In this document: piece by piece, positions 35,287-61,569 of the stretch | Position numbering within the stretch: the stretch's first letter is position 1 | Layout of the letters: each line of letters starts with the position of its first letter | Source: Oculina patagonica | Lineage: Eukaryota | Assembly (NCBI RefSeq): GCF_052425735.1 | Contig: NC_135761.1 | Location: 35,216,001-35,280,000, forward strand | Direction of reading: 5' to 3' | Length of the DNA stretch: 64,000 bases | Notes under the pieces: generated by a model | Told to the model about the DNA's origin: nothing | The model's database searches: none | What the model saw: the letters and a program-made list of their open reading frames with translations, nothing else | Made by a program: the position numbers and the translations under genes

Positions 35287-35921
35287 CAACCTCGTCCCCA
35301 GGGTGCTTTTTCCTTTAGAGCGGGAGGGACAGGAAAAGGCCCTGGTCTCGGCCGGTCACATGGCCACAAAACACCCAAGAATCGCAGGTGTTTTAAGTTA
35401 TGTAAATTTCTGAGCGGCAACTAACATGCAAGATGACGGATCTTCATCAGTCAGCTGATCGCAGTCAAACCATAGTTAATAGAGGGAAGTGGTTAGGAAG
35501 CCGGGCAAAGTTCTTTGTTGTATGTTTTTGTTCGCTATTTTGGGGGTTGACCCTGCACAAAACCTGAGAAAATACAATAGGTGGTAACGTGTGTTCATGC
35601 AACTAACCAATAGAATCATAGCGATTACGTATTTCATGCATAGTGTATGAGTGCAAAACAAAAGATGTGCAGGGTCGTGGACCTTCCAACATAAATATTG
35701 GCCTCTTTGTTTGCTCCTTTGATGTTTGCCGGGCTTCCTAACCATTTTCCTATATTAACTATGGTCAAACAAAGTTCTTAACCGTGCTTCGCCAAATTAA
35801 GATCGCTTTAAACTACGGCGAATTTCTGTCTCTTTTTCAAAAACTGCTTCAGGTCAAGTGCTTCGAATATATTCTCAAAGGACACGATGTTATTGGCGTT
35901 CTTCCAATGGGATTTAGAAAA
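35287..35921 (+). mobile_element. Left end of an AcademH-type element with RecQ motif 0/I fragment, interrupted at ~35922
   Basis: Starts caacctcgtccccagggtgc with a subterminal hairpin (…ggaaaaggccctgg). 35841-35921 reads KLLQVKCFEYILKGHDVIGVLPMGFRK, a degenerate RecQ LPTGFGKS. Confidence 0.65.
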
Positions 35922-36042
35922 TAATAAGGCATATACTTCATGGTAGAAAGCCACGAGTGCACCCGAGGTATATACTTCATGTAATAGTAATTGTACTGTC
36001 GCTTGCTCGGTGTATTGATGGTAGTTATCGTTATTGTTTGCA

Positions 36043-37312
36043 ATTGTTGGTAGTTGTTGGTTGTTACTAGTAGTTGCTGGTTGTTATTAGTAGTTACTGG
36101 TAGTTGCTGGTAGTTACTAGTAGTTGTTGGTTGTTACTAGTAGTTGTTGGTTGTTAATAGTAGTTGCTGGTAGTTGCTAGTAGTTACTAGTGGTTGATGG
36201 TTGTTAATAGTAGTTGCTGGTTGTTAATAGTAGTTGTTGGTTGTTAATAGTAGTTGTTGGTTGTTAATAGTAGTTACTAGTAGTTGCTGGTAGTTGCTAG
36301 TAGTTACTAGTGGTTGATGGTTGTTAATAGTAGTTGCTGGTTGTTAATAGTAGTTGTTGGTTGTTAATAGTAGTTGTTGGTTGTTAATAGTAGTTACTAG
36401 TAGTTGCTGGTAGTTGCTAGTAGTTACTAGTGGTTGATGGTTGTTACTAGTAGTTGTTGGTTGTTACTAGTAGTTGCTGGTAGTTGTTGGTTGTTACTAG
36501 TAGTTGTTGGTTGTTACTAGTAGTTGTTGGTAGTTACTGGTAGCTGTTTGTTGTTACTAGTAGTTACTGGTAGTTACGGGTAGTTGTTGGTTGTTACTAG
36601 TAGTTGCTGGTAGTTACTAGTAGTTGTTGGTTGTTAATAGTAGTTGCTGGTAGTTTTTGTAGTTACTAGTAGTTGCTGGTAGTTGCTAGTAGTTACTAGT
36701 GGTTGATGGTTGTTGCTGGTAGTTGTTGGTTGTTACTAGTAGTTGCTGGTAGTTACTGGTAGTTGTTGGTTGTTACTAGTAGTTGCTGGTAGTTAATGGT
36801 AGTTGTTGGTAGTTACTAGTAGTTGTTGGTAGTTGTTGGTTGTTACTAGTAGTTGTTGGTAGTTGCTGGTAGTTACTGGTAGTTGTTGGTAGTTACTGGT
36901 AGTTGTTGGTAGTTACTGGTAGTTGTTGGTTGTTACTGGTAGTTGTTGGTTGTTGCTGGTAGTTACTGGTAGTTGTTGGTAGTTACTAGTAGTTGTTGGT
37001 AGTTACTAGTAGTTGTTGCTGGTAGTTACTGGTAGTTATTGGTTGTTACTAGTAGTTGCTGGTAGTTACTGGTAGTTACTGGTAGTTGTTGGTAGTTACT
37101 GGTAGTTGTTGGTTGTTACTAGTAGTTGCTGGTAGTTGTTGGTAGTTACTGGTAGTTGTTGGTTGTTATTAGTAGTTGCTGGTAGTTGATGGTTATTACT
37201 AGTAGTTGTTGGTAGTTACTGGTAGTTGTTGGTTGTTACTAGTAGTTGCTGGTAGTTACTGGTAGTTATTGGTTGTTACTAGTAGTTGCTGGTAGTTGTT
37301 GGTAGTTACTAG
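36043..37312 (-). repeat. 10-bp minisatellite array A, (GGTAGTTACT)n and variants; reverse complement of array B
   Basis: Direct inspection of ~1.27 kb of 10-bp periodic sequence. Confidence 0.97.
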
Positions 37313-38252
37313 TTGTGTTATTACATTTGTTTTGAATTTTCAATAAAAGTCACCAATAGTTCCTTTATTTTTGGGAGGACTTCCATGACGCAAAAAGTTC
37401 CTTTTTAACACGAAATGAAGTGTGTGTGTGTTTTTTTTTACCGAAAAAAGCGAATTCGGTTAAAAGGCGATATGCATTTTGCACCTGTGATTTTATTCGC
37501 ACTGCGTTACCCTTTATAAATATGCTTGTACAAAGAAGGAAAATCGCTTGAAGTTTACAATGGTTGAGGTATCGTAATATATGGATTAACAAATTACAGC
37601 AAAGAATTTGCTTTGTACGAATTTTTATCCACTCATTGCGAAACTTCGAAACATTCACTCATTGTCTGTCTCACCTGCGCTTTGCAATTTGTGTATAAAA
37701 ATCCGTAAGCACGTTCTTTAAGGCCATCTGTATGCCATCTGTATGTTCTTTTTATAATTAAAGAACAATTAAAATTTACGATTTTTATCCTTTTAACTAG
37801 CTAGATTTTTTCATTCACTACTTGAAGGCTCGTCTCTAGATATGTTTCTAGTCTTTTTCTTTTATATTCGAGTTTTCCACTTATTTGTTGGAGCTTCTTC
37901 TTGTTAAATTTCACTCCAAGATCCTTTGCTGCATTACTTTCAATCACATAATTATATAAAGTGCAAATATGCTCATTGCTTGGCTACAAATTGCGTTCAC
38001 GCTCGCGCACATAAAAAGACCTTAAAATTTAGAATCACCGATCACGAAAAACTAAAAGCCCAAATCACGTTTCACGACAAATAAATAGCCACAATCACGC
38101 TTCACGTCAAAAGTGTAAGGGACCCTGTTTGCACTCTAGAAATATAATTTGTGTTTCTTTGGTTTGCATTTTCTATTTTCTTTTTTCAAATTGCTCGGTT
38201 ACCTCTGTCGTCTAAGCGATGACATATAAACTCTTAACACTTTTACAAAACT

Positions 38253-38350
38253 CAACTCGTTTCCCGGGGGTCTCTATCCCGCTACTCAGGGGAGAGAGAG
38301 AAAGAGAGGGACCATGGGGCGGAGAGAAAGACACCCTGGCAACGAGGATG
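38253..38350. mobile_element. Degenerate solo-hairpin AcademH-type MITE
   Basis: caactcgtttcccgggggtctct...gacaccctggcaacgaggatg; imperfect inverted ends of the CAACCTCG family. Confidence 0.5.
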
Positions 38351-40853
38351 ATACTAAATGCTTGTTACGCACGAGAAAATCTCTTTGTCCCATTGTCTCT
38401 GTCATAATAAGCAATTTCAAGTGGCTAATGACAGACGATCCGCAGTAAGCCAGTTAGAACGCGTGATGCAGAAAGTGCTTCCTAGATTAAAAAAAAACTA
38501 ATTATTTTTTACCCCCTCCCACATCCAAGAAATTGGTGCTTGAAAAATAACCAGTTTAGGCCAATCATTATGCGTGACCTTGAATACCTTCCAATGAGCC
38601 GCCTATGCCTCTTGTAATTTCCGAAATACCACATCAAATAGACGCCTCTTTTCGTGTTACACAAACCCAAATGTTCCTAATTTTTACGCAACGTTTGTTA
38701 AGGCTTAAATGCAAGGATGTTGGATGTACAGAATCAGTGCAGAATAATTTTTAACAAGTATTTTTCTGTATGTATCAGACACATTAAAATTCCCCTTGCT
38801 AAAAGTTTTTGTGATACTACCTATCAGAACAATTAGGTTGTTTTGTTTAACATTCGGCAAGTCAGAAAAGTGAAAATCTAACTGGTACGTAGTGCGGTGT
38901 ACATGTCTCCATCACACATCTGGAAAGAAAAGGCTCCCGACATTGTGAAAACAAACCGGAGTGATGTTATCTTCTTGGCCTAAATGAACCCCTGGACTAT
39001 CTTCTTCAACACCTGACAAAGGTACATGAAGCTTACCTATTGCCATTTTCATAAAAAAAACCATTAGTTTTCATTGTAACGAGTTCAGCTCCTCATAAGC
39101 ATTGAAATCAGACTTCAGACTCTAACAAGTTGGCATGATTGGCCTAAGCCCGTTGACGATTGTGCAACTTTTCTGTTTAAGTTGACTGCCATTAGACAAC
39201 GCTAACAAGGACAACATTCGTGTTTTTGTCTGACCGAAAATTAAGATATGATATCCACCACTGACGGCATTAAAGAGAAAATCCAAATTAATTGTTCAAG
39301 CAAAATAAATACTACAGATGGGGGAAAAATGCATAAACTTCATTGGTTTAAGTAAAGGAGCGTACGGCTATCAAATTTTGCGTAACTGTAACTGTTGTTT
39401 TGCAATGGTAACTGATAACGCTTTGCCAGTCAGTTACGTCATGTTAAATGTAATTGCTACATTCTACCTCGATTGAATGACGACATCCATAATGATGTCT
39501 GTTTGCGTTGATAACTTATGAAAACAAGTAATTTCGCCGAGAAAAAAACAAAACAAAAGAGCAACAATGGCAAAGCCGAAAAAATACCTTACTGTAGGAC
39601 ATAAACGCGATTAACACAAGGAGAATCAGCTGTGTCGACAACAAGAAAATTTTCTATAACATTTTTTTGGCCAAAATCACACGAAATTGATGTGTTAGAT
39701 GACGAACAAGTTAACATTATCTGGACAGGAACAAGAAAATGGGGCGAAAACAATAGGATTTAGGAACACGCTATTTTTACTGACAAAAATTAACGCGACT
39801 TAACTACATTGAGCAATAGCTTCCTATATTAAGGTACATCTTAAACCTCAACGACAGACAAAAACTGAGCGATATTCAACGAAAATTAGGAATAAAGTTG
39901 GGTATAGTTAAAGATGCATTGATATTTTTAAACTGACCTTGAAATCACTAGCTCACTCTCTATTTCCTCTTTTCTGGAGTCAGTATAAGATGGTTGACGC
40001 GACTAGCTTGTATTTCCTTTTGTTCAGCCGATTCAAAGTGTACTTAATAAGCATACACTGATCATGAAATGAAAAAATCTTCCCGTCATTATACTTTGTC
40101 ACCCGATTAGAATCTTGATTGCTTAATAACATGGGTTGGCCAATTATTTCAAATATTTCACAAGTGCATGACGGAGTTGGATGATGTCAGGAGACTTCCC
40201 TTCTTTGGAGTTTTATTTTTTTGACTGTTGAATGAGGCCACATACTTTAAATCACGTGGAATTATGCAATTCAGTTAACATTATCACTGGATGTTTTTTT
40301 TAGTTAAGCAATTTCTTTAAATATTTCACAAGTGCACGCTGGAGATGGATGATATGAGGAAATTTCTCCGTTTGTAGTATTGTTACGGTGTATTCCTATT
40401 GGTAATTGAATGAGACCATGCATGGCCGTTCCCGAAACACGTGAACTTGAGCAAGGCAAACTGTGATATCACTGGCTTTTTTTTAGTTCATTACCAGATC
40501 CTATATTTAGTATTGACTATTATGATTGGACAGTTGCATCTATATTACCAGCTACTTTAATCGCGATCTAGTCAATAGCTACATCTCCAAAGACGGATTG
40601 TACCTAGACACCAGTGTTGGAACGGAACACCTCTATCGTCAAACTTTTCCTTTGCTTTGGTATATAAAGGTTAGTAACATATACCTATTTATTGTTTACG
40701 GCTGTGTTCTTCACGTTGCAGAGGCTTGATTTGAACAGTAACACATTTTGTTTTACTAAAAAAGAAAGAAAAAGAAATTTCGTTATCGAACCTCAATCTA
40801 CATTATTTTTTTGTCCTTTTGTGGAATAAATTTTGCATTTTTAAGGACCCCTC

Positions 40854-41429
40854 AGAATGCACATGAAGCTTTTTACTATTATTATTCTCGTATATGCCAA
40901 TCAAATGTATGGGTAATTTTTTACTTAAAAAATTAGCGACATTTTAAACATCGTTTCGACGTCGTTTACTATGTCATTATTAAGAAAAATGCTTTCTTAT
41001 CAAGTAAAATTGTTTTTGTAATTGGCATTGTTACCATATAGTCACCTCAGTTGTCGATTTTTATAAATTACCTAATAAGCATAATTTGAAGATCTACTTA
41101 AACGACACCTACTGACCTACGCATCGTGAATGATGTTGAAAAGAATGCACATGAAGCTTTTTACTATTATTATTCTCGTATATGCCAATCAAATGTATGG
41201 GTAATTTTTTACTTAAAAAATTAGCGACATTTTAAACATCGTTTCGACGTCGTTTACTATGTCATTATTAAGAAAAATGCTTTCTTATCAAGTAAAATTG
41301 TTTTTGTAATTAGCATTGTTACCATATAGTCACCTCAGTTGTCGATTTTTATAAATTACCTCATAAGCATAATATGAAGATCTACTTAAACGACACCTAC
41401 TGACCTACGCATCGTGAATGATGTTGAAA
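40854..41429 (+). repeat. Recent tandem duplication, 288-bp unit x2
   Basis: 40854-41141 is nearly identical to 41142-41429. Confidence 0.9.
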
Positions 41430-41474
41430 CGTTATTTTTCAATTGAACTAAAAATAATATTATTTTTCGTAAGT

Positions 41475-41680
41475 CTTTCTTTTTTTTTTTTTTTTTTTTT
41501 TTTATTAGATTTCCCAACATTACAAAAAATATTTACAACAAAAAAGATAAAATATATAATAATAATAAAAAAATAGTGGGAGGATAACAGCAGGGGGAAA
41601 CTGAATTCCCATGTAAAAGCTGTTATCCTAGATAAAGCTAAAAATTTACAAATAAATTTACTAATGAATAAATTTACTAA
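41475..41680 (-). mobile_element. Poly(A)-tailed retroposon 3' fragment
   Basis: Long T run on the + strand followed by AT-rich sequence with a small hairpin (aggataacagc...gctgttatcct). Confidence 0.4.
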
Positions 41681-42025
41681 TGAATAAAATTTTTTTCGCT
41701 TTTGTACATATGAACGTTTTACTTCATGGTCAGTTTTGAGTCCCTTATTACGTTAATAATTGTAGAATAATTTTGTGATGCTTGTTGTCGTCTTAACAAT
41801 ATCCCTCATTACTCAAACGCCGTATCGTTGAATCTTTCAGCGGGTAATACTGACACTTGCTTAATACATACATCCACTATTCGATTTAAACTGCAAACAT
41901 CCCCGGCCACGTGGTTATGTATTCGAGAACACCTGTTTGATTTTAGCGCGAGATCCTTACTAAACTAAACTAAGATTCGCTAGGGAATTTCTATACGTAG
42001 CATTTGGCTCTTAACGGGACTGAGT

Positions 42026-42444
42026 CCCGGGAGGAGGGGGGGGTACTCTCCATAATGGCCTATATGGGGAAGCTCCGCCCGAAAGGGGTACCTTTTTCAG
42101 GCTTCAGGTACATAAAAGGGTAGGGATTTTACGTGTTTAGGTATACAGAAGGGTATGGAAATCTGGCATTTAAGTTTTTAAAAGGGCCTTTAATTGAAAT
42201 ATTTTGTACAGATGCAAATTATGGCTGTATTATTTTATTAAGCGCTACATGAAAATGATAAGAAAACGTCGTGTTATTCGCCTATTCCAAGTCTTTCAGG
42301 TACATGAAAGGGGTACCTTTTTTCAGAAAAAGGTATACGAAAGGGGTACAATTTCTTTTAAAATGGTATATAAAAGGGTAAGGGGTTAGAGCTCGGGGTA
42401 GAGCCTCCCCGTTTAAAACTTTTTTGAGTGCCCCCCCCCCCCTG
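42026..42444. mobile_element. MITE with CCCGGG-G-run-TACTC / GAGTG-C-run ends
   Basis: cccgggaggaggggggggtactc...gagtgcccccccccccctg, with internal gaaaggggtacc repeats. Confidence 0.65.
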
Positions 42445-43209
42445 AGTTCCTACACAGGAATGTATTTAATAAACCGGCTAAAGGTTAGACACCCTTGGCG
42501 GCACGCCGGTATTCGAATGTGTTAAGTGCCAGTCATATTCTAATAAACGAGGTGTCTACTTCCAATGTGAAAGAGGAGTAGCTGGACTTAAGAAAGAAAA
42601 TCCTTGGCTTTGGGTTAACTTGTAACTGGCCTTCATTGTATTACAGGAAGCATCAGATAAGTCCATGGAATAAGTCAAAACGTTTAAAGAGGACTCCACC
42701 AATCACAACTTTGGGTTTGTAAACAAGAAAACTGGAGCTTAAAGTCTGACTTCACTTTTAAGCTTAAAATCCTGCGAAGATCTGCTGAGGTCACTGGTTA
42801 CATATGCAGCATAACAGGGGAAAACGAGGAGTTTTCAAGGTAAATGATAGTGTATAGTGATATTTTAGCATTTTATTTAAAGCGAGATAACGTATTTTAA
42901 AAAAAAAAAAAAACGAAAAAAAAAAAAACGAAGTATGCCATGCTTCCTTCACATAAATCAATAACCTCGCAAAGCCGGCTGGGCAGACGTTTTTCAGTCA
43001 CTCAATTGACTAAGTTCATGATTATCTTTTCCCTTGATTTCTAACAGTATGTTTTTGAGCAGTTGCCTTGTCGAAGCAATTACACTGTCAAAACAAACTT
43101 AAAGCTCAAGATTGTTTTCAAGTTGCTTTGTCCACAAGAATCTTTAAACAACCTCAGTGTGATTTCAAGAATTTAAAAATACATCATATTTCTATTTTTG
43201 TTGTTTTAG

Positions 43210-46200
43210 GCTAGGCTTTTTCTCCATGGAGTCAACCAACGCTAAGCGCGATTTCGTGAAGATGATAAATCAGACCTGTGGTGGGGGTAACTTTACGTGC
43301 TCGTTCAACGATCGCGAAATGAGCGAATACATCCAGTTTCGGAAACGAAAGGATCAGGTGGACGTAAAAGGCGTGGCAACCATTCTTGGAGAGCAGCCGA
43401 ACTCAAACGTGTGGATAATGAACAAGGAGTGTTACTTGGATGAGGATGGGTGTACTCTCGACCCAAGTGACTCTCCTTTTTGTTGGATATCCGATTACTT
43501 GAGCGGCCCAGGTATCGCCCCAGCAGGAAGCAGCTGTGTAGTTAAGTTCCCTCAGGAAGCTTACGTTCTTCGTGAAATTATCTTGACCTTGTTTTCAGTG
43601 ATAGAGCACAACGCTATTAGCACCATACTGATGCTGGGTGCCAGCGCCATGTCCCTGCAATACAAGACGATCCTGGAGACGAATTTGAACTGCCCTGTCC
43701 CTGTGGCCCATGGACCAAGTGGTACGGGTAAAACTACAGCTTTGCTGATGGCACTGTCTATCCTTGGGGCCCACAAGAATAATTTTTATTCAAGGGGTAC
43801 CAAGGAAAGTTTTGTTTCTATCCTGTCAAGACAAACAATACCAATTGGCCTGGACGATCCCCAGTCCGTTAAAAATATAAGCGAACTGCTGATAGACCTA
43901 CACGGTGGAGTGAAGGCTACCAGTATAAAGAGGGGAGGAAGTAAGCCTCTTGGAACTGTCTTAACCAGCGCTAACTTCACTCCAACTGAAAGTGCAAGGT
44001 ATTATTTTATTTATTCTTGAGGCAAATGTGTTTTGTTTTTTTCAGAACAATGTGATACCGTGTTTGTGGGGATAGATTATAGGGGGAAGGTGGGAGGGGC
44101 ATCAAAGTACGCGGTTCCTTTCTTGAAGGGAAAGGGGGGGGGGTGAAATATCTCCGCTTCGGATTGAACTATTTCAATAACTGAATAGCCGGTGAGACCG
44201 GCGTAAGACAACTTTTAAATTTTCAGATTCAACCTTGTGCTTCTCTGTAATGAAAAAGGCGCATTATGTAAAGCTTAAAGCATTTTTACTCAAATAGAAG
44301 GTTTTCTAAGAACTAGTTCTAAGAAGCAAAACAAAAGGAAATTTTGCAATGATCGAACTTCAATGTTCTGCTTGCTAGGTACGCCTCGAGATGCCTTCTG
44401 ATCCCCTTCTGCCATCCGCCGTTAAACATCAACACACCTGCCAAGAGAGTGGGCTACTCGCGCCTGACCCGCCTCATGGAAGAAGGCAGTAAGGCGATAG
44501 GAGCAATAGTATGTTTGAAGAAAAAGTATATTGGAGAGGGTGAGCAGGAAATCAGACAAAATATTGAGCCCTACGTGTCGGATCTTCTAAACGCGGCCTA
44601 CCCGAGGACACACAGAGGTTACTCTACCCTGCTGTGGTTCACATTTCAGGTACGAACAATTATGAAGTAACAAAAACACAATAGATCCTATTTCTCGATA
44701 CAATTAACGCTCGCATATTAAAAAACTATTACCTCGTTCGATTTGCTATTGTTATCAATATCTTGACCGGCCCAAGCCGTAAATTTCTTATTCTCAGTTC
44801 ACCGGAAGTGCTAGTGTGGCAACAATGGTAGTTAATTAATACTGTTCGATAACTACCTATTAACATTTCTTCATTATTATTATTATTTGTTTTCAGATCC
44901 TAGGGGCAGCCGATTTAAGTTTCCTTAAAGAGGAAGTGCTACAATATTTTGAAAATGTTGTGGCAGTCAATGTCTTAAAGTATCAGAGTTTGTCCAAGCC
45001 TCCTCGAGGAAAAACCGTGACACAAGAAAAAAATGCCACTGGAGAAATCGCCAAACCATCTGGTGGTGAAGAAAGGCCATTTATCGTCTTCCTTGCCGAG
45101 ACGCTAATCGATGGGTTAGAAAAGCTATCGATTCAGGAGGTGCGTGCCCGAGAGCTTGAGTGAAACATTTTTTGACAGAAAATATAACCTTCATTTACTT
45201 AAAATAATCAGTCCACACGCAATTCTCTATTGAACTCTGGTTAAAAAGAAAATATACAAATTTTGTTTTTCCTTAAGTTGTTCCCATGAGATAATTTCAG
45301 TTAAAATGTCAATAGTCTACCAACATAATAACACTCTAAAAGCTTTTACATGCTCTAAGCTTCTATGTACACAAGTTATAATATCACAAATTCAGGTGAA
45401 TTATTACGAAATTAACATATAAACATATAAACTTGTTTTTTTGGTAAAATCTTATTTTCGTTTACATCATTATTATTTCAAAATCAAATTTTACAAACAG
45501 TGAATTTAAAAGAAAAGAAAAGCTATAAAAATTCTACACGTATTATTCTCGCTTCATATATAACTCAAGAATCTTTTAAAACTATTGGATTCGTGCTCAA
45601 CCTTTCTCTATTTCTATATCAATGTCATTAACGTTTAGATTGGTCCTTCTCCTGATAGTGCGTGAACCTCTAAGGCATAGAAGCGTTGATCTCAAGATTG
45701 CAAACGAGACTCGAGTTGAAACCCAAGCGATAGTCGTGGAGTAGGCTTCCCCTTTCTTCTTCTTCTTCTTCTTATGATTATGATTATTATAAATATTATA
45801 TTTTCTCAGATAATGACGTTTTGCCGTGATGAACGCGACAGATTTAAAGGTCGAGACGCGTTCGCACTTCACTATTTCGTGTCATTCGCCGAATTCTTGC
45901 TTCCACATATGGGCAAGATTCGGTATATGATACAAAGCGAAGTTTGCGGCGAGGTGAACTGTACAAGAAATTTTCTTGATATGGCGCACGCCGAAAATAA
46001 AGAAGTAAAAAAGGTAGGGGAAAAAGTACATTGATTATGAGAATTGCTTAAGATCAATCACTTCTAAAGATGTCTTACTTTAAATTTATAGTAAGTCATT
46101 TTCATGGAGGAGAGTAATGATCACGCGAAAGAAAATTGCAAAGCGATATAACGCTAAGAAAGTAATTCCAACGATTATTTATAATGATTTATCTCTTGCA

Positions 46201-47418
46201 GATCTATGCTAGCGGACAGCAGAAGAATGTCAAACAAAAGAAATGTGATTTACTCTGCTGGGATATTTTCCCAGAAGACCAAAGACTCAAGTTGAAGACA
46301 GGTATCGTCATATGCATGTTAGCAATAATTGCACGTATATAGACATTAATTTTCATTGTTTTTGAAAGATTTATTTCCATTGCTTTAAAAAGGTAAACTG
46401 AGTCAATTTGAAAAACATATTTTAAGGTCTCAGGTCTTCCCGCTAAGTTCCACGAGGCAGTTAAGTTTCAGGCCAAATACCTCTTTGGCTTAGTCGTTAC
46501 GGTCAACATATTTTATGACTAATGTTTAAAAGTTTTAAATTTTTACGCCTAACGGCTCATTTTTGGCTCATATTACGGCTTACGGTAAACCCAATTGAAA
46601 CCTCTTAGAATGATGACGATAACTGGTTTCTAGTGACCAAGTATTTTAAGTAATTTAAAAAAAAAGCCTTCAATTAAAGTTAAGTTAATTAACATTTCAG
46701 CAATGTCCGGTCAGAAAAATGAAGATCCCGCTCCAGAAAATCATACAACAACTATCACCGCCACAGCGCAACCAGAGTCTGAACAACAGACAACTACCAC
46801 AAATATGCCTGTGGCATCTTCCAATGTCGACCAACAGACAGCTGGTCCAATGGCAGCGTCCCCTGACCAAGACACAATGCCAGTGGCAGAGTTCAATGAC
46901 CAAGCAACAGTGATCGAAGACCACACCTCTGTGGTTGAAGAACCAAAACAGAAACGCAAGAAGAGAGGTAATTGAAACCAAGTTATTATATAACGGCGTT
47001 CTAAATAGTTACATTTGTCGGCCAAGCTGATTTTAATAAAGTGCTACAATGAGGGAACTGTTCGCATTTTTCCTTAAGCAGTTTTATGACATTAACATAA
47101 GAAAGAATACGTCATATGATGTTTTCAAATAGCGCTTTTCTTGCCAGAGGTATTCAAGTTATTAATATGCTAATTGGAGAAGATAAAGATAAAATAAGAT
47201 AACCTCATAATGACCTTGTAGACTAAACCAAATTATAACCTGTAAAAAAGGTTTTTAAAAGGGTCACCAAATATAACAGAAACTTAAAATAGCATCCGTA
47301 TACTAATTGCTTTTTAATTTACTTGAATTTTTTTAAAGGGCCAAAGGGACAAGCAACACTTAAGTCGACAGTGACCCGCAGTAAGGCGCGAAGAACACGA
47401 CAGAATCTTGAAGACTAA
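43210..47418 (+). CDS. Spliced SF3/DUF927-like AAA+ helicase gene (7 exons, ~650 aa; 5' end uncertain)
   Basis: Exons 43210-43998, 44379-44649, 44897-45139, 45810-46013, 46202-46301, 46701-46967, 47339-47418; all GT-AG, phase-consistent, no stops. Walker A GPSGTGKT, Walker B IGLDD, motif C TSANF, Arg-finger-like YASRCLLIPF, basic tail KQKRKKR. A phase-compatible upstream exon ends at 42839 but has stops near its 5' end. Confidence 0.8.
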
Positions 47419-49970
47419 AAGAAAACATTACACGATGATCATAATCAGTGTCCATTGAATACATTCAAAACTTAAACACTTTTGAAATTATGTGTGAATA
47501 TGTCAAAAAAAAATGATATTTCGAAAAATTTTCAGCGCTATGGAATCCAGAAAAAAGAAAAAATATTGTATTCGTGAAAAATGTTAATTTTGTTGTCACT
47601 AAGCGTGTTTCATTGAATAGGTTCAGTAAACAATAAATACTTCAAATGATTAATTTAGCTTTAGTTGTTGAACAGGTTGAGATTTCACCTTAGCGAACTC
47701 AATTATTTTTGTAAACAATAAATCCGAATTTATTAGGCGAATATGCATGTACACTCATGTGTACTCACGAACATACATTTTGCCTTTACATTCTGTCCGA
47801 TGCCCATAATTTATCATTGATTAATTTGAAAAGAAAACTAGAAAATAATACATGGTAGGTTTGCAATCATTCAGAACTGAAAAGAATAACTAGGTAAAAA
47901 CAATTGAATTCTTTATCTGTATTTTAGTTTGTGTTCTGTAGATGAAGTAAGCAGAGTCTCCGTAATAATGAAAGCGAACAACCTCATCCGAAAGAAATAA
48001 CCTTAATTTGTGACGATTTATCGCAATTTGGATAAAGATTTTAAACGTTCAAATAAACATACCATAACAACAAGCGTTTGCCTCTTTATAATTAGTTGTA
48101 AGTTAAAAAAATTCAAAACCGACAACTAACAGAAACAATCACTAGCAACTACCAACAACAACCTGAAAAAACAAAAATTAGACACAAATACCAGCCGCTC
48201 CCGACAAATACCCAAAAATACCAGCAACTACCAACAACTACCAGTAACAATCAACAACAATCAAGAACTAACAACAACTATCAACACCAACCAACAACTA
48301 ACAACAACTACCAAGAACTACCAGTAACAACCAACAACTACTAGTAACTACCAGAAACTACCAGTGACAACCAACAACTACTAGTAACAACCAACAAATA
48401 CCAGCAACTACCAAAAACTACCAGCAATTAGTAGTAACAACCAACAACTACTAGTAACAACTAACAACTACTAGCAACTACTAGTAACAACCAACAACTA
48501 CTAGTAACTACCAGAAACTACCAGTGACAACCAACAACTACTAGTAACAACCAACAAATACCAGCAACTACCAAAAACTACCAGCAATTAGTAGTAACAA
48601 CCAACAACTACTAGTAACAACTAACAACTACTAGCAACTACTAGTAACAACCAACAACTACTAGTAACAACTAACAACTACTAGCAACTACTAGTAACAA
48701 CCAACAACTACTAGTAACTACCAGAAACTACCAGTGACAACCAACAACTACTAGTAACAACCAACAAATACCAGCAACTACCAAAAACTACCAGCAATTA
48801 CTAGTAACAACCAACAACTACTAGTAACAACTAACAACTACTAGCAACTACTAGTAACAACCAACAACTACTAGTAACAACTAACAACTACCAGCAATTA
48901 CTAGTAACAACCAACAACTACTAGTAACAACCAATAACTACCAGCAACTACTAGTTACAACCAACAGCAACTACTAGTAACAACTACCAATAACTAGTAG
49001 TAACAACCAGTAACTACCAATAACTAGTAATAACAACCAACAACTACCAGTAACTACCAATAACTACCAGCAACTACTAGTAACTACTAATAACTACCAG
49101 CAACTACTAGTAACAACCAACAACTACCAGTAACTACCAACAACTATAGGCAACTACTAGTAACTACTAATAACTACCAGCAACTACTAGTAACAACCAA
49201 CAGCAACTACTAGTAACAACCAACAACAACCAATAACTACCAGTAACAACCAGCAACTACTAGTAACTACCAGCAACTACTAGTAACAGCCAATAACTAC
49301 CAATAACTACCAGTAACTACCATCAACTACTAGTAACAACCAACAACTACCAGAAACAACCAACAACTACCAGTAACTACCAATAACTACCAGTAACTAC
49401 CAGGAACTACTAGTAACAACCAATAATTACCAATAACTACCAGTAACTACCAGCAACTACTAGTAACAACGAACAACTACCAGTAACAACTACCAGTAAC
49501 TACCAATAACTACCAGCAACTACCAGTAACTACTAGTAACAACCAACAGCAACTACTAGTAACAACCAACAACTACCAATAACTACCAGTAACTACCAGC
49601 AACTACTAGTAACAACCAAAAACTACCAGTAACAACTACCATTAACTACCAATAACTACCAGTAACTACTAGTAACAACCAACAACTACCAACAACTACC
49701 AGCAACAACCAGTAACTACCAACAACTACCAGCAACTATCAGTAACAACCAGTAACTACCAGCAACTACCAGTAACAACCAGTAACTACCAACAACTACT
49801 AGTAACAACCAGTAACTACCAGTAACTACTATTAACAACCAACAACTACCAGCAACTACTAGTAACAACCAGTAACTACCAATTACTACCAGCAACTACC
49901 AGTAACAACCAATAACTACCAGCAACTACCAGTAACAACCAGTAACTACCAACAACTACTAGTAACAACC

Positions 49971-52774
49971 CAGCCTCGTCCCCAGTCGTCCCCGGCGAAT
50001 TTGGATGTGACGTCACCCGCCAAGCTTGTCGGGGAAGTTCGCCTAGGACGCCTGGCAATAAACGGCAAATCCAATATGGCGGAGCCTGTCCAACGATTGA
50101 ACTTCAGTCAACTTCTTGAAGAACTTAAAAACGCGTCAGAATTAGGCTGGGATTCCTTCATCCATGTCTGCCAGCAAACTCGTGAAGTAATTGGAGATTT
50201 TTTATTTAAGGTAGAAAAATTAAATGTCGATTTTTATGCGCAGCAAATTGTACCATCTAAAGAGCTTTATAAAGAATATGTTCCACTAACTGTAACTGGC
50301 GATGGGAGCTGTCTCTATCGATCGATTTCTCTGTTGGTGTCTTGGTGAACGGAGATAGAATAGTGGTCGTTCGTGGAAAGTTGTATGATGAGTATTTTTG
50401 CTTCTCGCTAACACAACAACAGCGGTGAAAAGATAAAAGGCTCAAAGCTGATATCCATCAGTACTTTCAACTGTGCTTTCGTGTGTGCTTTGTTTGTTCC
50501 TTTGCCTTCGCTTTTTTCGAAAATTTTTCGCAGTTTTATCCAAGGTAAGTGAAGTTGTAACTATTTATTCGAAGTATCAGTAGCGAAATATATGACTAAA
50601 GCTACTTATCAGAAAATTAGAAAGCTGTGTAGTGGTTTGTTTTCTGGGAAACAAACGCTGCAATTCGCCTACTGTTGGTGACGATACCGAGTTGTAATGT
50701 GTCAACTCAGCTGCTTAACAGATTCAACTTCTCTCTTGTGAACTTCAGACTTGTGAGACTCTATAACATACCAAATTCCCTTCGGCCACTAAGCATTGAC
50801 AAGATTATGATTGTAAGGAAACAAAAAACTGTTCCGAATGGACTGGTATCAAAATGTTTAGAATGGCTTCATTTCAGTTTAAAAGTCGTTTCTTACTGTT
50901 AGTTAATGTTATATTTATATTGTTACTATTGTTACTATACAAACATTATCCAGAGTATCTTCTAGATATACAATGTACTCTATTTGGATTCATTAAAGAC
51001 CTTTAGCCACTTAGCTTGGCACAATCAATCAAAAGGCTTTATTCTTCTCTTATGCTTTAGAAAGATGGGTTGGTACAAGCAGATCAGGTTTCATCAGCTG
51101 GCAATGTCATACATTTTCTATGGGCAGACCTCAAATATCAAGAGAATATGAAAACATAATATAACACTTTCCACTGCCTCCAGCTTTCCCTGCCTCCTCC
51201 CCAAATCACCCCACCCTACCAAATGCACTCCCCTAAATTCCAATAACTACTAGTTTTAGTATATATTGCAAGAGTTGAATACATGTAAATACTTTTGTAT
51301 ACTGCACTGTGTTTATGTGTGTGTGTGTGTGTGTGTCAGTCAAGCTCAGTTTAATATCCCTGCAAGTAGGAGTTAAAAAGGTGGTAGTTTAAGGAATGGG
51401 AAAAATAGCCAGTGTACCCATGTGAGGAAAAATACAAATATTTTTGGGCTATCAAAAATGCAGAATGGGGCTCACAAATTAAAAAGAAACTGGTCCAAAA
51501 GCCCCAGTAACCAGCTTTTCTGGAGCAGTTCAAACAATATTTAAACATTATATATTTTGATATTTTAATTTATTTGCAAATAAACATATAAACACAGTAT
51601 ATATATATATATTGTGTTTGTGTTTCTTTGCAAGTAAAATGTCAGGGAGAATAGCAGAAGAATCATACTTTGTTAAACAAGCTATGTCTACAATGATGCA
51701 GTATGTACCTTGTCTAAAGGGGAAAGCAGTGCACTTCTGTTTCTTTTTGAACATCTCAGCAGGTAAATTTGTCAAAACTACACGAAAATTGGCAGCAAAA
51801 TATATAAACTTCAGCTGAAATGCTAACTCTGCAACTGAGGGAAATTGAAATAAATTTCCACACCTTTTGGGCTGACAAGAACTGTTGGCTATTTAGTGGT
51901 GCTACACAATGGAAATGTTATCAATTCACACTTGGAATCTGCAATAAGTCATGACCAGCTGTAATTTTTATTTAATAAGCTCATTGAATTGACGAAAATG
52001 ATTGAAGCATACTTGTTATATATAACCTGAACATGGCCCAGGATTTGGATTAACATTTCCTGCTAATGAAATGAACCAGAGTATACAAGAAAAAGACAGG
52101 CTACATCAAGATCAAATAAAGTTTTGGCTTACGAGAGTTAGATTATTTTTTTTCTTTCTCTAAAAAGCTAAATAAAAAATTACAGGTAATCAATGACAAG
52201 CTTTAATACATGCATCGGGGGATTAGCCCTCTTCTCTCAAGTAAGCTGAATTGTTTCTTTGTTTTCGCACATAAATTTGTAAACAACAAAGGTCGAAAAT
52301 CCCGACCCTAGCTCTATAAACATTGAGATCGACGTCTTTCAGGTTTAAATAAAACTAACACAGTTACTAGTACCTGGCGAACGTAATTTGCTTACCACAA
52401 AGAACTTCTAGATACATGTAGACCCATGTATCACTACGAGTAGTGAACGAAAACAATGATGACAGAATAATTTTCTTAACTCTATTAAATACGACCAATA
52501 CCATTCTGCAAGGCAGGAAAAAACGGCATTACAGTTCGTCTCCGCCATCTAAAATAGTCCACAAATGTTCAAAAGGGATGCAGTTTCCTCATGAACCAGA
52601 AATATTTTCTTTTACTCGCAGAAAAACGTATATTTTCGTCGAGCTATATCTGGGACTTTTTCTCGCTAAACTGGGACTTTTTTGCCATTTTGTGCCAGGC
52701 CTCGCGCTATCGCGCTCGGTTCCAGTCCTCCTGCGCTCACTCGCATAGCGCGGTATGGCCTGGGGACGAGGCTG
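49971..52774. mobile_element. 2.8-kb non-autonomous AcademH-type transposon
   Basis: Perfect 15-bp TIR cagcctcgtccccag / ctggggacgaggctg. 9-bp TSD gtaacaacc (49962-49970, 52775-52783). Subterminal GC-rich hairpins. Confidence 0.85.
50076..50348 (+). pseudogene. Vertnin-like OTU protease N-terminal fragment inside the AcademH-type element
   Basis: MAEPVQ...VDFYAQQIVP...YVPLTVTGDGSCLYRSISLLV matches the OTU catalytic Cys motif GDGxCLxRS; truncated after it. Confidence 0.6.
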
Positions 52775-54252
52775 GTAACAACCAGTAACTACTAGTAACA
52801 ACCAACAACTACCAGTAACTACCAATAACTACTAGTAACAACCAACAACTACCAGCAACTACTAGTAACAACCAACAATTACCAGTAACTACCAACAACT
52901 ACAAGTAACAACCAGTAACTACCAATAACTAGTAGTAACAACCAACAACTACCAATAACTAGTAGTAACAACCAGTAACTACCAATAACTAGTAGTAACA
53001 ACCAACAACTACCAGTGACTACCAATAACTACCAGCAACTACTAGTAACTACTAATAACTACCAGCAACTACTAGTAACAACCAACAACTACCAGTTACT
53101 ACCAACAACTACCAGCAACTACTAGTAACTACTAATAACTACCAGCAACTACTAGTAACAACCAACAACAACCAATAACTACCAGTAACAACCAGCAACT
53201 ACTAGTAACTACCAGCAACTACTAGTAACAACCAATAACTACCAATAACTACCAGTAACTACCAGCAACTACTAGTAACAACCAACAACTACCAGAAACA
53301 ACCAACAACTACCAGTAACTACCAATAACTACCAGTAACTACCAGCAACTACTAGTAACAACCAATAACTACCAATAACTACCAGTAACTACCAGCAACT
53401 ACTAGTAACAACGAACAACTACCAGTAACAACTACCAGTAACTACCAATAACTACCAGCAACTACCAGTAACTACTAGTAACAACCAACAGCAACTACTA
53501 GTAACAACCAACAACAACCAATAACTACCAGTAACAACCAGCAACTACTAGTAACTACCAGCAACTACTAGTAACAACCAATAACTACCAATAACTACCA
53601 TTAACTACCAGCAACTACTAGTAACAACCAACAACTACCAGAAACAACCAACAACTACCAGTAACTACCAATAACTACCAGTAACTACCAGCAACTACTA
53701 GTAACAACCAATAACTACCAATAACTACCAGTAACTACCAGCAACTACCAGTAACTACTAGTAACAACCAACAGCAACTACTAGTAACAACCAACAACTA
53801 CCAATAACTACCAGTAACTACCAGCAACTACTAGTAACAACCAACAACTACCAGTAACAACTACCAGTAACTACCAATAACTACCAGCAACTACTAGTAC
53901 AACCAACAGCAACTACTAGTAACAACCAACAACTACCAGTAACAACCAATAACTACCAGTAACAACCAGCAACTACTAGTAACTACCAGCAACTACTAGT
54001 AACAACCAATAACTACCAATAACAACCAGTAACTACCAGTAACTACTAGTAACAACCAACAACTACCAGCAACTACTAGTAACAACCAGTAACTACCAAT
54101 AACTACCAGCAACTACCAGTAACAACCAGTAACTACCAGCAACTACCAGTAACAAGCAGTAACTACCAACAACTACTAGTAACAACCAGTAACTACCAGT
54201 AACTACTAGTAACAACCAACAACTACCAGTAACTACCAGCAACTACTAGTAA

Positions 54253-57139
54253 TAGTCAGGTGCCCAGGAGTCCAAAATGTGACACCCACGGGCATTTTTG
54301 TCTGATTTTTGGCAACATAGCTATTTTTACTAAATCGAGTACGCTGATTTCGAAAATAAATGTTGCCAAGCTTTATTCTTGCGTTAAGATGATGTTTTGA
54401 TGCATTTAATTATGACGTCATCGTCCAAATAAGGAATTTTCTTTCTTTTAGCTATTTTAAGCATAATACATCCAGAAATTTATTTAAAGCATTGTTAATG
54501 TGCTGTAAAAATGATTTAAAGAATTTTCCGAGAGTTCTTACGCTGTTTCTGTGAAAATCAAGCCCTTCAGTGACAATTGACCACGCCCTCTTAAACAAAA
54601 TTTACCCTATCGCGGGAACCTTATCACGGGTGTAGTTTTGTTATTTTGTCAAAGGACAAATGCGATTTTTGTATTAACAAATCGCTATAGTTGCAATAAG
54701 AAAGAAAAATATTGTCGTCGTGCCACGCTGAAGCTACGAGCTAGCGAGCATCAAGAACGACGCCATTACAATTTTCATATATCGAGTTTCCCTTGTTTCA
54801 GCATTTCGTTTAATTTTTGTGGTAAAATAAATGGAAATAACATCATAGTTAATGTCGAATTATATCATCGTTGTTATAGTTAGAGATAAAACTTTATTGA
54901 TTGTCTTGTATATTGCTGAATCTAACTTATTTCACAATGCACTTTGTCTGTTATAGGCTCATGATAAAGACTTTGGTTGAACGCATGTAAAATTAACGAA
55001 TTCAAAATGATCATAACATTGCTCCTTGCTTTCAGGTTTAAAACTGTCTATAATATTTTTAATCAATATCGGTAAATATTTTTAATATATTTTCTAAACT
55101 TTTTAATAAACACTGAACTAATATTTCTTTTTAAACAAGTTTCTTTAAAGCACTTTAGCGCAGGTTGATATAGCAATTAGCGTCGGTCTTGGTGCATCCA
55201 CAAAGCCCAGTGCACATGGCATGTGTTTTCTAAATTCATAGCGAAGAGGCACATATATAGCCAGTGGTCAGATCGGATTTCATACATTCAACAAAGAAAC
55301 GTTTTCTGCGGAGGTAGTGGTGTCACCTTCAAGGACATCTTCGCCGACCGAGAAGAGAAGAACAAAGTGTTCTGTGAAAACTCTCCACAAATGAAAGAGG
55401 TGCTGTTACAGCCGGTGATGGTGTGAGATGGTAACAATGAACTTGACGAGTTATTAGGAATATTTGCTGAGACACCCTCTAAAGTTATTTACGTTGGATT
55501 CTCTGAAGTTCCTGCCCATATCCACACTGTTGATGAGAGCTTAGCGCGATCGATGTGCCAGGAGAAGTAACAGCAAGTCTGTGCCTCGAGTGGAAACTAT
55601 TATGTTGACGACATGCCCGCTATGACTGACTGCATAACGAACAAACTTCGTATCGGCTTCCTCTTGGTTGGATCTCAAAAAGGCTACATCTAGGTCAGGA
55701 TCTGAGTAGAATCCACTTCGTACGAAAAACCACGAGATAAACTACGATTGCAGAGTCAGTGCCTGCGAGATAAGTTCATCTGAGAGAATCCGTGCAAAGT
55801 CCGCTTTATTGTCTCCTAGTGCCATAAAAAAGCTCGTCACTTCATCGGCCGCAACTGAACCTCTCTTACGTACTTCAATGACTCTGCTCACAGGCCGCGC
55901 CGTGTTCCCGGAGCGTCGATTTCTTGTCGTTGCTTTTATGGAGTGCCTCCCATCGAGTAACTCATCAATCCTCTGGTATCCAGGACCTTTCCGTAAAACA
56001 GTTCCGCAAACCCACCGAAAGCATTTACATTTTTTGGTTTCCCAATAGCTGCCACCATAATTAGTATGCTGCCACCAGGGGCGAAGCCATCGAAGAACAA
56101 ACTGACTCTAGGCAGATGACCTTTTCTTCTGAGAACGTCTTCTAAAATTGACTTGTTTCACACTTGGTGGGTTCATTTCTGCGAGAAACAGTGGCACCGG
56201 CATTGAACCTCAGATGCTACAATATGGCTTGCTGTTTATCTTGCGCCTGCCTTTATACACCGTCACTAGACAACATAGAATACTCTGGTTTCTATGCAAA
56301 TTTAAAGTCTTTCTCTTTTTGCGGCTAGTTGCAGCACTTTTAACTTCATAAAGGCTGGCAAATAGAGGTGGATTATTCTTGCGAACAGGGTCACGAAAGT
56401 TTGTCTTCCACCCCTTCTTCCCGTTCCCGTTTTTCCTCTCTGTCTGAAGATAGTAGCCTCCATTCCACGAATTGTTCAAGCTGAGTCTGTCCAATCGAAG
56501 ATCTTGTTTTATTTCTAGAGTCATGAGATCTTTCTTGGCAATTTTTTGCAATGTCTCATTTGTCCGTGACAAGAACAACCCGGATTTTGTTGTGTGGAAT
56601 GTAGAGAATTCTCAGCTTCATTATCTTGCTTCTGTCTCTCCTTGTCACTCTCTTTGTGGATAAAAGCAGTCGTTATGGTGTATGTCAAACATCGCTGATG
56701 TTTGTGGAGCAATTCAATTACAACTCTCTATTAATACAAGAATCACATTCATTTTTAAACAAAATGTTTACACTATACCCGTGATAAAGTGAATTTTTAT
56801 GAGAGGGCGTGGTCAATTCTCACTGGACGGCTTGATATTTATAGAAACGGTATAAAAACTATCAGAAAATTCTTAAAATCATTTTACAGTATACTAATAA
56901 TGTTTTGAACAAATTTCTGGATGAATTATGCTTTAAATAGCTAAGGGAAGGAAAATTCCTTATTTGGACCATGACGTCATAATTAAATGCATCAAAACAT
57001 CATCTTAACGCAAGAATTAAGCTTGGCAACATTGATTTTCGAAATCAGTGTACTCGTTTTAGTAAAAATAGCTATGTTGCCAAAAATCAGACAAAAATGC
57101 CCGTGGGTGTCACATTTTCGACTCCTGGGCACCTGACTA
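54253..57139 (-). mobile_element. 2.9-kb internally deleted AcademX-type transposon
   Basis: TAG...CTA termini; ~370-385-bp imperfect TIRs (54253-~54636 vs ~56772-57139); 3-bp TSD TAA (54250-54252, 57140-57142) restores an agtaacaacc unit. Decayed minus-strand coding remnants inside (e.g. HVHWALWMHQ). Confidence 0.85.
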
Positions 57140-59942
57140 TAACAACCAACAACTACCAGCAACTACTAGTAACAACCAACAACTACCAGTAACTACCAAC
57201 AACTACCAGTAACAACCAGTAACTACCAATAACTAGTAGTAACAACCAACAACTACCAATAACTAGTAGTAACAACCAGTAACTACCAATAACTAGTAGT
57301 AACAACCAACAACTACCAGTAACTACCAATAACTACCAGCAACTACTAGTAACTACTAATAACTACCAGCAACTACTAGTAACAACCAACAACTACCAGT
57401 AACTACCAACAACTACCAGCAACTACTAGTAACTACTAATAACTACCAGCAACTACTAGTAACAACCAACAACTACCAGTAACTACCAGCAACTAGTAGT
57501 AACAACCAACAACTACCAGTAACTACTAGTAACAACCAACAACTACCAGCAACTACTAGTAACAACCGACAACTACCAGTAACTACCAATAACTACCAGC
57601 AACTACTAGTAACTACTAATAACTACCAGCAACTAGTAGTAACAACCAACAACTACCAGCAACTACTAGTAACAACCAACAACTACCAATAACTACCAGC
57701 AACTAGTAGTAACAACCAACAACTACCAGTAACTACCAGTAACTACCAGCAACTACTAGTAACAACCAACAACTACCAGTAACTACCAGCAACTACTAGT
57801 AACAACCATTAACTACCAATAACTACCAGAAACTACTAGTAACAACCAACAACTACCAGTAACAACTACCAGTAACTACCAGTAACTACCAATAACTACC
57901 AGTAACTACCAATAACTACCAGCAACTACTAGTAACAACCAACTACCAGTAACAACCAACAACTACTAGTAACAACCAACAACTACCAGTAACAACCAAT
58001 AACTACCAGTAACAACCAGCAACTACTAGTAAATACCAGCAACTACTAGTAACAACCAATAACTACCAATAACTACCAGTAACTACCAGCAACTACTAGT
58101 AACAACCAACAACTACCAGAAACAACCAACAACTACCAGTAACTACCAATAACTAGCAGTAACTACCAGCAACTACTAGTAACAACCAATAACTACCAAT
58201 AACTACCAGTAACTACCAGCAACTACTAGTAACAACCAACAACTACCAGTAACTACCAATAACTACCAATAACTACCAGTAACTACTAGTGACAACCAAC
58301 AACTACCAACAACTACCAGCAACTACCAGTAACAACCAGTAACTACCAACAACTACCAGCAACTACCAGTAACAACCAGTAACTACCAGCAACTACCAGT
58401 AACAACCAGTAACCACCAACAACTACTAGTAACAACCAGTAACTACCAGTAACTACTAGTAACAACCAACAACTACCAGCAACTACTAGTAACAACCAGT
58501 AACTACCAATAACTACCAGCAACTACCAGTAACAACCAGTAACTACCAGCAACTACCAGTAACAACCAGTAACTACCAACAACTACTAGTAACAACCAGT
58601 AACTATCAGTAACTACTAGTAACAACCAACAACTACCAGTAACTACCAATAACTACCAGCAACTACTAGTAACAACCAACAACTACCAGCAACTACTAGT
58701 AACAACCAACAACTACCAGTAACTAGTAGTAACAACCAACAACTACCAATAACTAGTAGTAACAACCAACAACTACCAATAACTAGTAGTAACAACCAGT
58801 AACTACCAATAACTAGTAGTAACAACCAACAACTACCAATAACTAGTAGTAACAACCAACAACTACCAGTAACTACCAATAACTACCAGCAACTACTAGT
58901 AACTACTAATAACTACCAGCAACTACTAGTAACAACCAACAACTACCAGCAACTACTAGTAACAACCAACAACTATCAGTAACTACCAATAACTAGTAGT
59001 AACAACCAACAACTACCAATAACTAGTAGTAACAACCAGTAACTACCAATAACTAGTAGTAACAACCAATAACTACCAATAACTAGTAGTAACAACCAAC
59101 AACTACCAGTAACTACGAATAACTACCAGCAACTACTAGTAACTACTAATAACTACCAGCAACTACTAGTAACAACCAACAACTACCAGTAACTACCAAC
59201 AACTACCAGCAACTACTGGTAACTACTAATAACTACCAGCAACTACTAGTAACAACCAACAACTACCAGCAACTAGTAGTAACAACCAACAACTACCAGT
59301 AACTACTAGTAACAACCAACAACTACCAGCAACTACTAGTAACAACCGACAACTACCAGTAACTACCAATAACTACCAGCAACTACTAGTAACTACTAAT
59401 AACTACCAGCAACTAGTAGTAACAACCAACTACCAGCAACTACTAGTAACAACCAACAACTACCAATAACTACCAGCAACTAGTAGTAACAACCAACAAC
59501 TACCAGTAACTACCAGCAACTACTAGTAACAACCAACAACTACCAGTAACTACCAGCAACTACTAGTAACAACCAACAACTACCAATAACTACCAGCAAC
59601 TACTAGTAACAACCAACAACTACTAGTAACTACCAGCAACTACTAGTAACAACCAACAACTACTAGTAACAACCAACAACTACTAGTAACTACTAGTAAC
59701 AACCAACAACTACCAGTAACTACCAGCAACTACTAGTAACAACCAACAACTACTAGTAACAACCAACAACTACTAGTAACTACCAGCAACTACTAGTAAC
59801 AACCAACAACTACTAGTACACAACGAATACACAGAGGGAACCACAATCAAACGCAGGGGAAGCCAGCGAAGCTATTCCTGAAGAAGATGCCACGCACGAT
59901 GATGAAATCAGAGAAACGACAGAAACAACAGAAACCCGCGAG

Positions 59943-61520: not shown

Positions 61521-61569
61521 ACACCATACTCTTATCTTGAACATTAAGGATAAATTTTATACCAGTATA

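Follow-up and report, generated by a model that had tools for sequence, protein, structure and literature searches.

A probable family of very large foldback-type elements with 10-bp repeat arms in the coral Oculina patagonica, with a helicase gene inside one copy

A stretch of 64,000 nucleotides from the genome of the coral Oculina patagonica (NCBI RefSeq assembly GCF_052425735.1, contig NC_135761.1, forward strand), here called the window, contains a helicase gene that lies between two long arrays of a 10-bp repeat in opposite orientation. This locus raises the question of whether the arrays and the gene are parts of one mobile element and, if so, what place the helicase has in it. The contig is designated C4 and the window corresponds to C4:35216001-35280000; positions to the right of it are given as window-equivalents or in L013 (L013:1150 = C4:35281150 = window-equivalent 65150). 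A preliminary description had proposed a foldback-like element with terminal inverted repeats built from short tandem repeats, and the inverted arms, the terminal cassettes and the insertion site in a RecQ-like gene reported below bear this out. The inverted arrays are the two arms of one mobile foldback element. Taken as a whole, the locus is likely to represent a non-autonomous foldback-type family of very large elements that moves by cut-and-paste, with the helicase as a probable passenger.

Arrays in the window were detected with Tandem Repeats Finder (TRF) and by base composition (GC skew). The left arm, array A, occupies positions 36033-37316 on the + strand and consists of about 128 units of 10 bp (TGGTAGTTRC family). 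It is GT-rich on this strand (GC skew +0.69), has higher-order periods of 20 and 70 bp above the 10-bp unit, and gives inverted matches to array B. The right arm, array B, was placed by TRF and an orientation map on the - strand in three blocks, at about 48141-49970 (block 1), 52775-54252 (block 2) and 57136-59824 (block 3), and a fourth block of the inverted arm lies outside the window at window-equivalent 65150-66524 (L013:1150-2524). The complementarity of the arms is 76-83% across 600-1000 nt, which upholds the assignment of both arrays to one repeat family in opposite orientation. Array B had been described as running from 48140 to 59818; the inverted family stands, but a single uninterrupted array does not, because two transposon insertions split it.

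The outer ends of the arms carry terminal cassettes. The left cassette (35928-36032, + strand) is 105 bp long, starts with GGCATATACTTCATGG and has 20 full or near-full copies in the genome. It contains two copies of a 12-15-nt subterminal repeat flanking an imperfect palindrome, with the direct repeat ATATACTTCATG at 35931 and 35970. The right cassette is inverted and is located on the - strand outside the window, at C4:35282525-35282629, equivalent to window positions 66525-66629. The two cassettes of the window element are 99% identical, with one mismatch. Their termini begin GGYATATAC, and the tip hexamer TGGTAG recurs in every array unit. The window element thus spans positions 35928 to about 66629, or 30.7 kb, with its right end beyond the window. 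The right boundary had been considered lost under a long interspersed element (LINE), which was not correct: the array resumes past the LINE and ends in the inverted cassette.

Both flanks of the element belong to a RecQ-like sequence. On the left, an exon of a RecQ-like gene or pseudogene, recognised by translation (35742-35927, + strand), ends in a degenerate Walker A motif; the translation reads to KGHDVIGVLPMGFRK (LPMGFRK) and then two stops, and the cassette begins 6 nt past the motif. The proposed left boundary, a cassette with a direct repeat that cuts a RecQ Walker A, is real and sharp (35927/35928). On the right, the DNA directly past the cassette translates as K, a stop, LLFHLLPKFLPV and, further on, IVLVVYPLNSIIEDHLKVLKNRGVSVDVL (frame at L013:2636-2908). 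The top six matches of this peptide in the PDB are all RecQ, and it aligns to motif Ia of RECQ1, which follows Walker A; the match is weak (E 0.08). A search past the LINE for a matching terminus and for resumption of the RecQ frame therefore yielded both. The 7-mer AAATAAT is present at both junctions, the left one displaced by 2 nt (7 of 8 positions of a duplication), so that the target duplication of the window copy is imperfect. The interrupted RecQ-like gene already carries stop codons. Judged from the translated flanks, the window copy is an insertion into a putative RecQ-like pseudogene. A RecQ-like C-terminal piece (Helicase_C and a Cys-rich region) lies at 34125-34796 on the + strand, upstream of the interrupted N-terminal exon, and represents a neighbouring copy; its position on the same strand indicates that RecQ-like genes stand in tandem here.

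Loci of the array family were sampled in 160 kb around sites on C1, C5, C6, C9, C12 and C13. The genome contains at least 12 elements on 8 chromosomes, with the order cassette, array, core of 2.1-2.4 kb, inverted array and inverted cassette. The 20 full or near-full cassettes are 93-100% identical, all start at the same base (GGYATATACTTCATGG), and lie on the + strand at the left and on the - strand at the right of array loci. Their outer flanks are unrelated between loci, with the same precise terminus at at least nine sites. A long array in fixed orientation is found inward of 18 of the 20 cassettes; short remnants only are present at the C4 site C4b, and none at the C7 site. At all seven loci with an orientation switch, the arrays are GT-rich and then CA-rich on the + strand. 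Cassette pairs bound elements of 11.6 to 47 kb, and arms range from 1 to more than 20 kb across the family. An element on C1 (C1:8279489-8318855) is flanked by a perfect 8-bp target duplication, GAAAACAA. Two elements are located on C5 (C5:26687753-26734836 and C5:29413546-29425118) and three on C12, and further one-ended or unpaired copies on C7, C8, C9 and C13. Segmental duplication as the source of the copies was ruled out for most loci, where the flanks differ; the C5 pair shares 1.07-kb outer extensions. No exact match to the cassette was found in JGI metagenome contigs. The C1 copy lies immediately upstream of a start codon, that of a long RING/B-box (TRIM-like) open frame encoded on the other strand (L035:1-1500 = C1:8277989-8279488).

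The middle domain of the family is a conserved core without a substantial open reading frame (ORF), defined by family comparison at 46083-48140 on the + strand of the window. With the arrays masked, the spacers at four other loci (C12:6.874 Mb, C12:6.995 Mb, C5:26.708 Mb and C5:29.420 Mb) are 95-98% identical to window positions 46083-48200, in either orientation; for the cores themselves the identity is 95-96%. No spacer is present at the orientation switch in C9 and in one of the C12 elements (C12a). Differences in a 90-amino-acid ORF of the core fall at codon positions 1, 2 and 3 in the numbers 5, 6 and 4, without bias. The window core diverges from the others by 4%, and the others from one another by 0.8-1.7%, which suggests that the short copies are a young burst and that the long form is older.

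The enclosed gene encodes a superfamily 3 (SF3) helicase of the DUF927/D5 type. Splice frames give three exons on the + strand (43226-43998, 44379-44649 and 44897-45163) and a product of about 435 amino acids; the introns are GT-AG, of phases 2 and 0, and the stop codon is at 45161-45163. The long spliced gene of the preliminary description is indeed spliced, but is more compact than stated, being confined to 43226-45163. An extension of the gene into the core (43210-47418) was ruled out, as the three-exon model stops at 45161-45163 and its length fits that of a homologue of 430 amino acids from Ptychodera, which can be aligned with exons 1 and 2. The motifs Walker A (GPSGTGKT), Walker B (DDP) and C (TSAN) are all intact. 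For the protein searches, the exons were queried singly. Pfam PF00910 is borderline (22.3 bits against a cut-off of 21.5), and the matches in a language-model atlas are DUF927 and primase fragments. A profile of 26 relatives gave SCCmec Cch (5dgk) as its best match in the PDB (E 0.02). The AlphaFold (AF2) model has a mean predicted local distance difference test (pLDDT) value of 86, and its top Foldseek matches are Cch, poxvirus D5/E5 and SaPI Rep, with probability 1.0. PHROGs gave no match to the helicase, and neither PHROGs nor Pfam matched the later exons or the core ORF. From its motifs and predicted fold, the protein is classified as a putative replication helicase of SF3, of the DUF927/D5 kind. 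The family comprises 526 clusters at E <= 0.001; it is uncharacterised and has members in sea star, amphioxus, acorn worm and octocoral. A search of IMG/VR yielded no close viral relative. The interval 43000-48090 drew no poly(A) reads in two small runs and next to no small-RNA reads; runs of this size do not prove silence.

The gene is part of an 8.77-kb middle segment (37317-46082) which own-genome DNA searches did not find in the other copies, where the array adjoins the core directly at one constant junction. The segment is single-copy in the genome except for small pieces resembling short interspersed elements (SINE) or miniature inverted-repeat transposable elements (MITE), at about 41476-41700, 42020-42443 and 45236-46082, and a 288-bp repeat present twice. 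The first of these pieces is a repeat of about 210 bp with genome copies 90-99% identical; for the second, of about 420 bp, a first look at the genome gives thousands of candidates, 87-90% identical. The two 288-bp units (40854-41429) are 99% identical and lie upstream of the helicase gene.

Whether the helicase belongs to the element was examined through its own relatives in the genome (529 Mb). There are 12 matches, and all but one are 26-41% identical. The exception is a fragment of 437 bp, 91.5% identical, at C4:36005848, 750 kb away. It is fused just before Walker A to a remnant of an inverted arm, a - strand cassette follows about 1 kb further on, and the outer flank of that cassette differs from that of the window copy. 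Order and orientation fit a derivative, shortened by deletion, of a helicase-bearing element that had inserted at another site. The arm-fused fragment beside a cassette with a different flank indicates that the helicase-bearing form moved at least once, and a second, decayed copy at another site places the helicase segment in an older, long sub-lineage. Since the only close fragment is also inside such an element, the link between helicase and element is historical and real and no accident of the locus. The expected co-occurrence of helicase and inverted arrays holds for this close fragment but not for the 26-41% paralogues, none of which has arrays within 1.5 kb.

Helicase carriers in the family are restricted to the window copy and this one broken relative. 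Cassettes, arrays and core are the same in about ten other copies that contain no helicase; the gene is therefore not element-defining. Most likely the helicase is a passenger that was either captured as a gene or left over from another mobile element; it probably does not itself move the element.

A transposase was sought inside the copies and in the genome at large. None was found by ORF scans in the parts of the elements that were read, where only inserts of LINE, BEL/Pao, Tc1-like and Harbinger type were met, in agreement with the earlier observation that no transposase or recombinase lies inside. Genome matches of transposase domains were placed against the element intervals. Merlin elements, with an IS1595-type transposase, duplications of 8-9 bp and GG termini, agree with the coral family in duplication length and in the first two bases, and none of the 44 matches to the Merlin domain (PF12762) falls in an element interval. 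The 8-bp duplication would also fit Mutator-like elements (MULE; duplications of 8-10 bp), a superfamily in which FB-like elements are commonly placed, and a genome scan with PF10551 gave no match inside or beside element intervals or at the sites of the sister termini described below. The hAT superfamily was rejected, because the termini are not of the YARNG type and no PF05699 match lies in element intervals among the 150 of 386 candidates that were scored; only the 8-bp duplication fits. The P superfamily (Galileo-like, with a P/THAP9-type transposase and duplications of 7-8 bp) was also rejected, the termini being GGYATATAC and not CANRG and a genome scan with PF21787 giving no match in element intervals, so that only the duplication length fits. 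A connection with the giant P-like transposon that lies at 17-24 kb of the window was rejected as well, as the two have no terminal sequence in common.

A second set of termini has the first 16 nt of the cassette (GGTATATACTTCATGG) in common and continues ...GGGTG. It includes an inverted pair 6.3 kb apart, C4:27064006(+)/27070308(-), and single sites at C3:28841610, C6:38287038, C12:5849244 and C12:27915655. This set may represent a sister family or an autonomous partner, for which the inverted pair is the leading candidate.

The sequence of events that would account for the locus is as follows. A transposase supplied in trans would recognise the cassette, as the doubled subterminal motif and the presence of the tip hexamer TGGTAG in every array unit lead us to infer, and insertion would make a target duplication of about 8 bp, which is shown at one copy. 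The window copy would have inserted into the RecQ-like pseudogene and would later have taken up three other transposons in its right arm. In its middle it carries the 8.8-kb segment with the helicase, which would derive from the older, long sub-lineage. The earlier proposal of a mobile or replicative unit, with arrays serving as terminal inverted repeats or as origins, is sustained for mobility and the role as inverted repeats, but not for origins, for which nothing shows such a role.

Several observations weigh against this account. No mobilising enzyme was found in the parts of the elements that were read, and a coding copy could lie in the large remaining parts of the elements on C1, C5 (C5a), C9, C13 and C6. 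A perfect target duplication is seen only on C1; that of the window copy is offset, and none is recognisable at three other cassette pairs. The simple model does not account for the two C5 copies, in which the inverted arms extend past the cassette for 1.07 kb at either end. These outer extensions (L043-L046; regions C5:26686253-26689355, 26733234-26736336, 29412046-29415148 and 29423516-29426618) share the end point TTAA followed by GAGTGTGTCC, with different DNA beyond; this outer end resembles a second-level terminus, as of an element that targets TTAA. Assembly is also error-prone in long tandem arrays. Finally, the differences between the two helicase copies fall at codon positions 1, 2 and 3 in the numbers 8, 6 and 17, and this modest excess at third positions, together with the intact gene, hints at possible selection and hence function.

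The last point bears on an alternative in which the helicase-bearing long form is the functional master, its SF3 helicase aiding in the replication, unwinding or processing of the hairpin arms, and the short copies are internal-deletion derivatives that depend on this helicase in trans and on a transposase from elsewhere. It would account for two independent helicase-bearing copies at different sites, for the one identical array/core junction in all short copies, as from a single deletion ancestor, and for the short copies forming a young cluster to which the window copy is the outgroup. No catalytic motif is missing from the intact gene, the differences are enriched at third codon positions, and the fold matches that of helicases which replicate mobile elements (SCCmec Cch, SaPI Rep, D5). 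Yet there is only one intact copy in the whole genome, the gene has no poly(A) reads in the two small runs, and no further ORF lies in the 5.9 kb that separate arm and gene. The helicase family is, moreover, large and widespread in marine invertebrates, and the twelve paralogue loci of this genome apart from the close fragment lie without nearby arrays. We regard this alternative as unlikely, with a small but real share of the probability. It is doubtful to about the same degree that the ancestral long form has in the SF3 helicase a dedicated gene, a replication-type enzyme for coping with its own kilobase hairpin arms or for loading on the TGGTAG repeats; if true, this would define a helicase-carrying class of foldback transposon.

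Much less can be said for a self-replicating unit without cut-and-paste, whose arrays would act as hairpin ends or helicase-loading origins in the rolling-hairpin manner of parvoviruses. An SF3 replicative helicase between long inverted ends able to fold back is what such a unit would contain, but no nuclease, Rep, primase or polymerase domain was found with it, about ten copies lack the helicase, and no close viral relative is present in IMG/VR; the copies are inserted in chromosomes, with a target duplication, and the host gene goes on past the site. This makes the possibility highly improbable. Scarcely tenable, and the least probable explanation, is an inverted arrangement that arose by chance or by local inversion in an ordinary satellite, with the helicase as an unrelated host gene trapped inside. 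Satellite-like arrays do occur at many loci, among them one of about 29 kb in a single orientation on C6 with no cassette detected. This explanation was nevertheless ruled out by the same order of orientation at seven of seven loci, by identical cassettes at both outer ends with unrelated flanks between loci and by the perfect 8-bp duplication at one copy, and the RecQ frame continues across the whole 30.7-kb unit. The foldback-type cut-and-paste family with a passenger helicase is the reading followed below.

Sequence rearrangements are found next to several copies. At C4:35281150-35300000, three tandem copies are found of a unit that comprises inverted array, right cassette and 4.6 kb of RecQ-like remainder; they recur every 6.2-6.5 kb and are 96.7-98.7% identical, and the third is without the first 55 bp of the flank. 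The triplicated terminus and flank span C4:35282525-35295325. A terminus and its adjacent flank likewise occur twice at a C12 element (C12c, C12:6982348/6988871) and twice inside the C5a element. Such repeats of terminus plus flank could result from aberrant transposition, unequal exchange or assembly error. The C6 array (C6:36090533-36119800, L025) consists of about 29 kb of the 10-bp repeat in one orientation, and no cassette was detected at it; it stands alone as a satellite, apparently one derived from transposon arms.

The right arm of the window element contains three inserts. A 2.8-kb transposon with 15-bp inverted ends, CAGCCTCGTCCCCAG, was delimited from its junction sequences at 49971-52774; its ORFs gave no Pfam match. 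The inverted ends of a 2.9-kb non-coding transposon at 54253-57135 are 354 bp long and 89% identical, and TA stands at each of its junctions. The LINE occupies 59825-64000 on the + strand, with ORF1 at 59943-61520 and, from 61846, ORF2 with an APE-type endonuclease (Pfam PF14529). It continues past the window to window-equivalent 65149 and terminates in a (TTAC)n tail. This LINE is 99% identical to one in the arm of the C1 element (L024:8311-10000) and has the same orientation relative to the 10-bp repeat, and the (TTAC)n tails of both abut units containing GTAAC. The LINE may favour the 10-bp repeat as a target. An insert in the arm of the C13 element holds an open frame of 374 amino acids for a Tc1/mariner-type transposase (DDE_3 and helix-turn-helix domains; L026:7708-8829 = C13:5188708-5189829). 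Outside the element, a minisatellite whose 42-bp unit is repeated about 25 times, and which has higher-order periods, occupies 14191-15267.

The characters of the foldback class, namely a terminal domain, inverted ends of tandem repeats and a variable non-coding middle, are all present in the family of the window element. FB elements make 9-bp duplications and contain repeats of 10, 20 and 31 bp, and some FB copies (FB-NOF) carry extra genes in the middle, as the window copy does. With FB and Galileo the coral family shares long, internally repetitive inverted ends, size and structure that vary between copies, and rearrangements beside copies. Galileo has a P-type transposase, 7-bp duplications and CA... 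termini (PMC3573991, PMC4168063), whereas the coral elements have termini beginning with GG and a duplication of 8 bp, and their intervals contain no P-type domain.

Tetris of Drosophila virilis has an outermost flanking domain, then tandem repeats as its outer domain and a middle domain without coding sequence, and makes duplications of 8-10 bp; few of its copies are complete, many are rearranged, no autonomous one was found, and its arm repeats also form satellite-like arrays (PMC4079207). By comparison of architecture, Tetris is the closest published parallel. The two are alike in domain plan, duplication size, the small number of complete and large number of rearranged copies, and the free satellite arrays. 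They differ in that the Tetris repeats are about 220 bp, with arms of up to 1.7 kb and no gene, whereas the coral elements have 10-bp repeats, arms of 1 to more than 20 kb and a total length of 12-47 kb; there is no sequence similarity, and the host here is a cnidarian. Tm1 of root-knot nematodes, a Mutator/Foldback family linked to a cut-and-paste superfamily and having a Mutator-type transposase relative, is a foldback element outside insects (PMC3169594). The coral family resembles it in having foldback architecture outside insects, and differs in that no MULE domain was found in or near its copies. The predicted fold of helicase exon 1 corresponds to the D5N and SF3 ATPase region of Cch (5dgk), SaPI Rep (8tch, 7ola) and D5/E5 (Foldseek E 6e-7 to 1e-4), but the identity is 11-17%, no primase or origin-binding domain is recognised, and the gene has introns and belongs to a family of marine invertebrates.

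No literature was found on foldback elements of corals or on an SF3 helicase inside a foldback element. To our knowledge, the moving enzyme is unknown for most foldback families, and few have been described outside insects and nematodes. The coral family is set apart by the 10-bp unit, the very large arms and elements, the cnidarian host and the helicase-bearing sub-lineage. With base-precise ends, a dozen copies and repeats that also occur as a stand-alone satellite, the family shows directly that a transposon can seed satellite DNA. The duplications of terminus plus flank beside several copies, together with the disrupted host gene, make it a likely driver of rearrangements in the coral genome, and the helicase-bearing sub-lineage provides a test case for whether giant hairpin elements need a helicase of their own.

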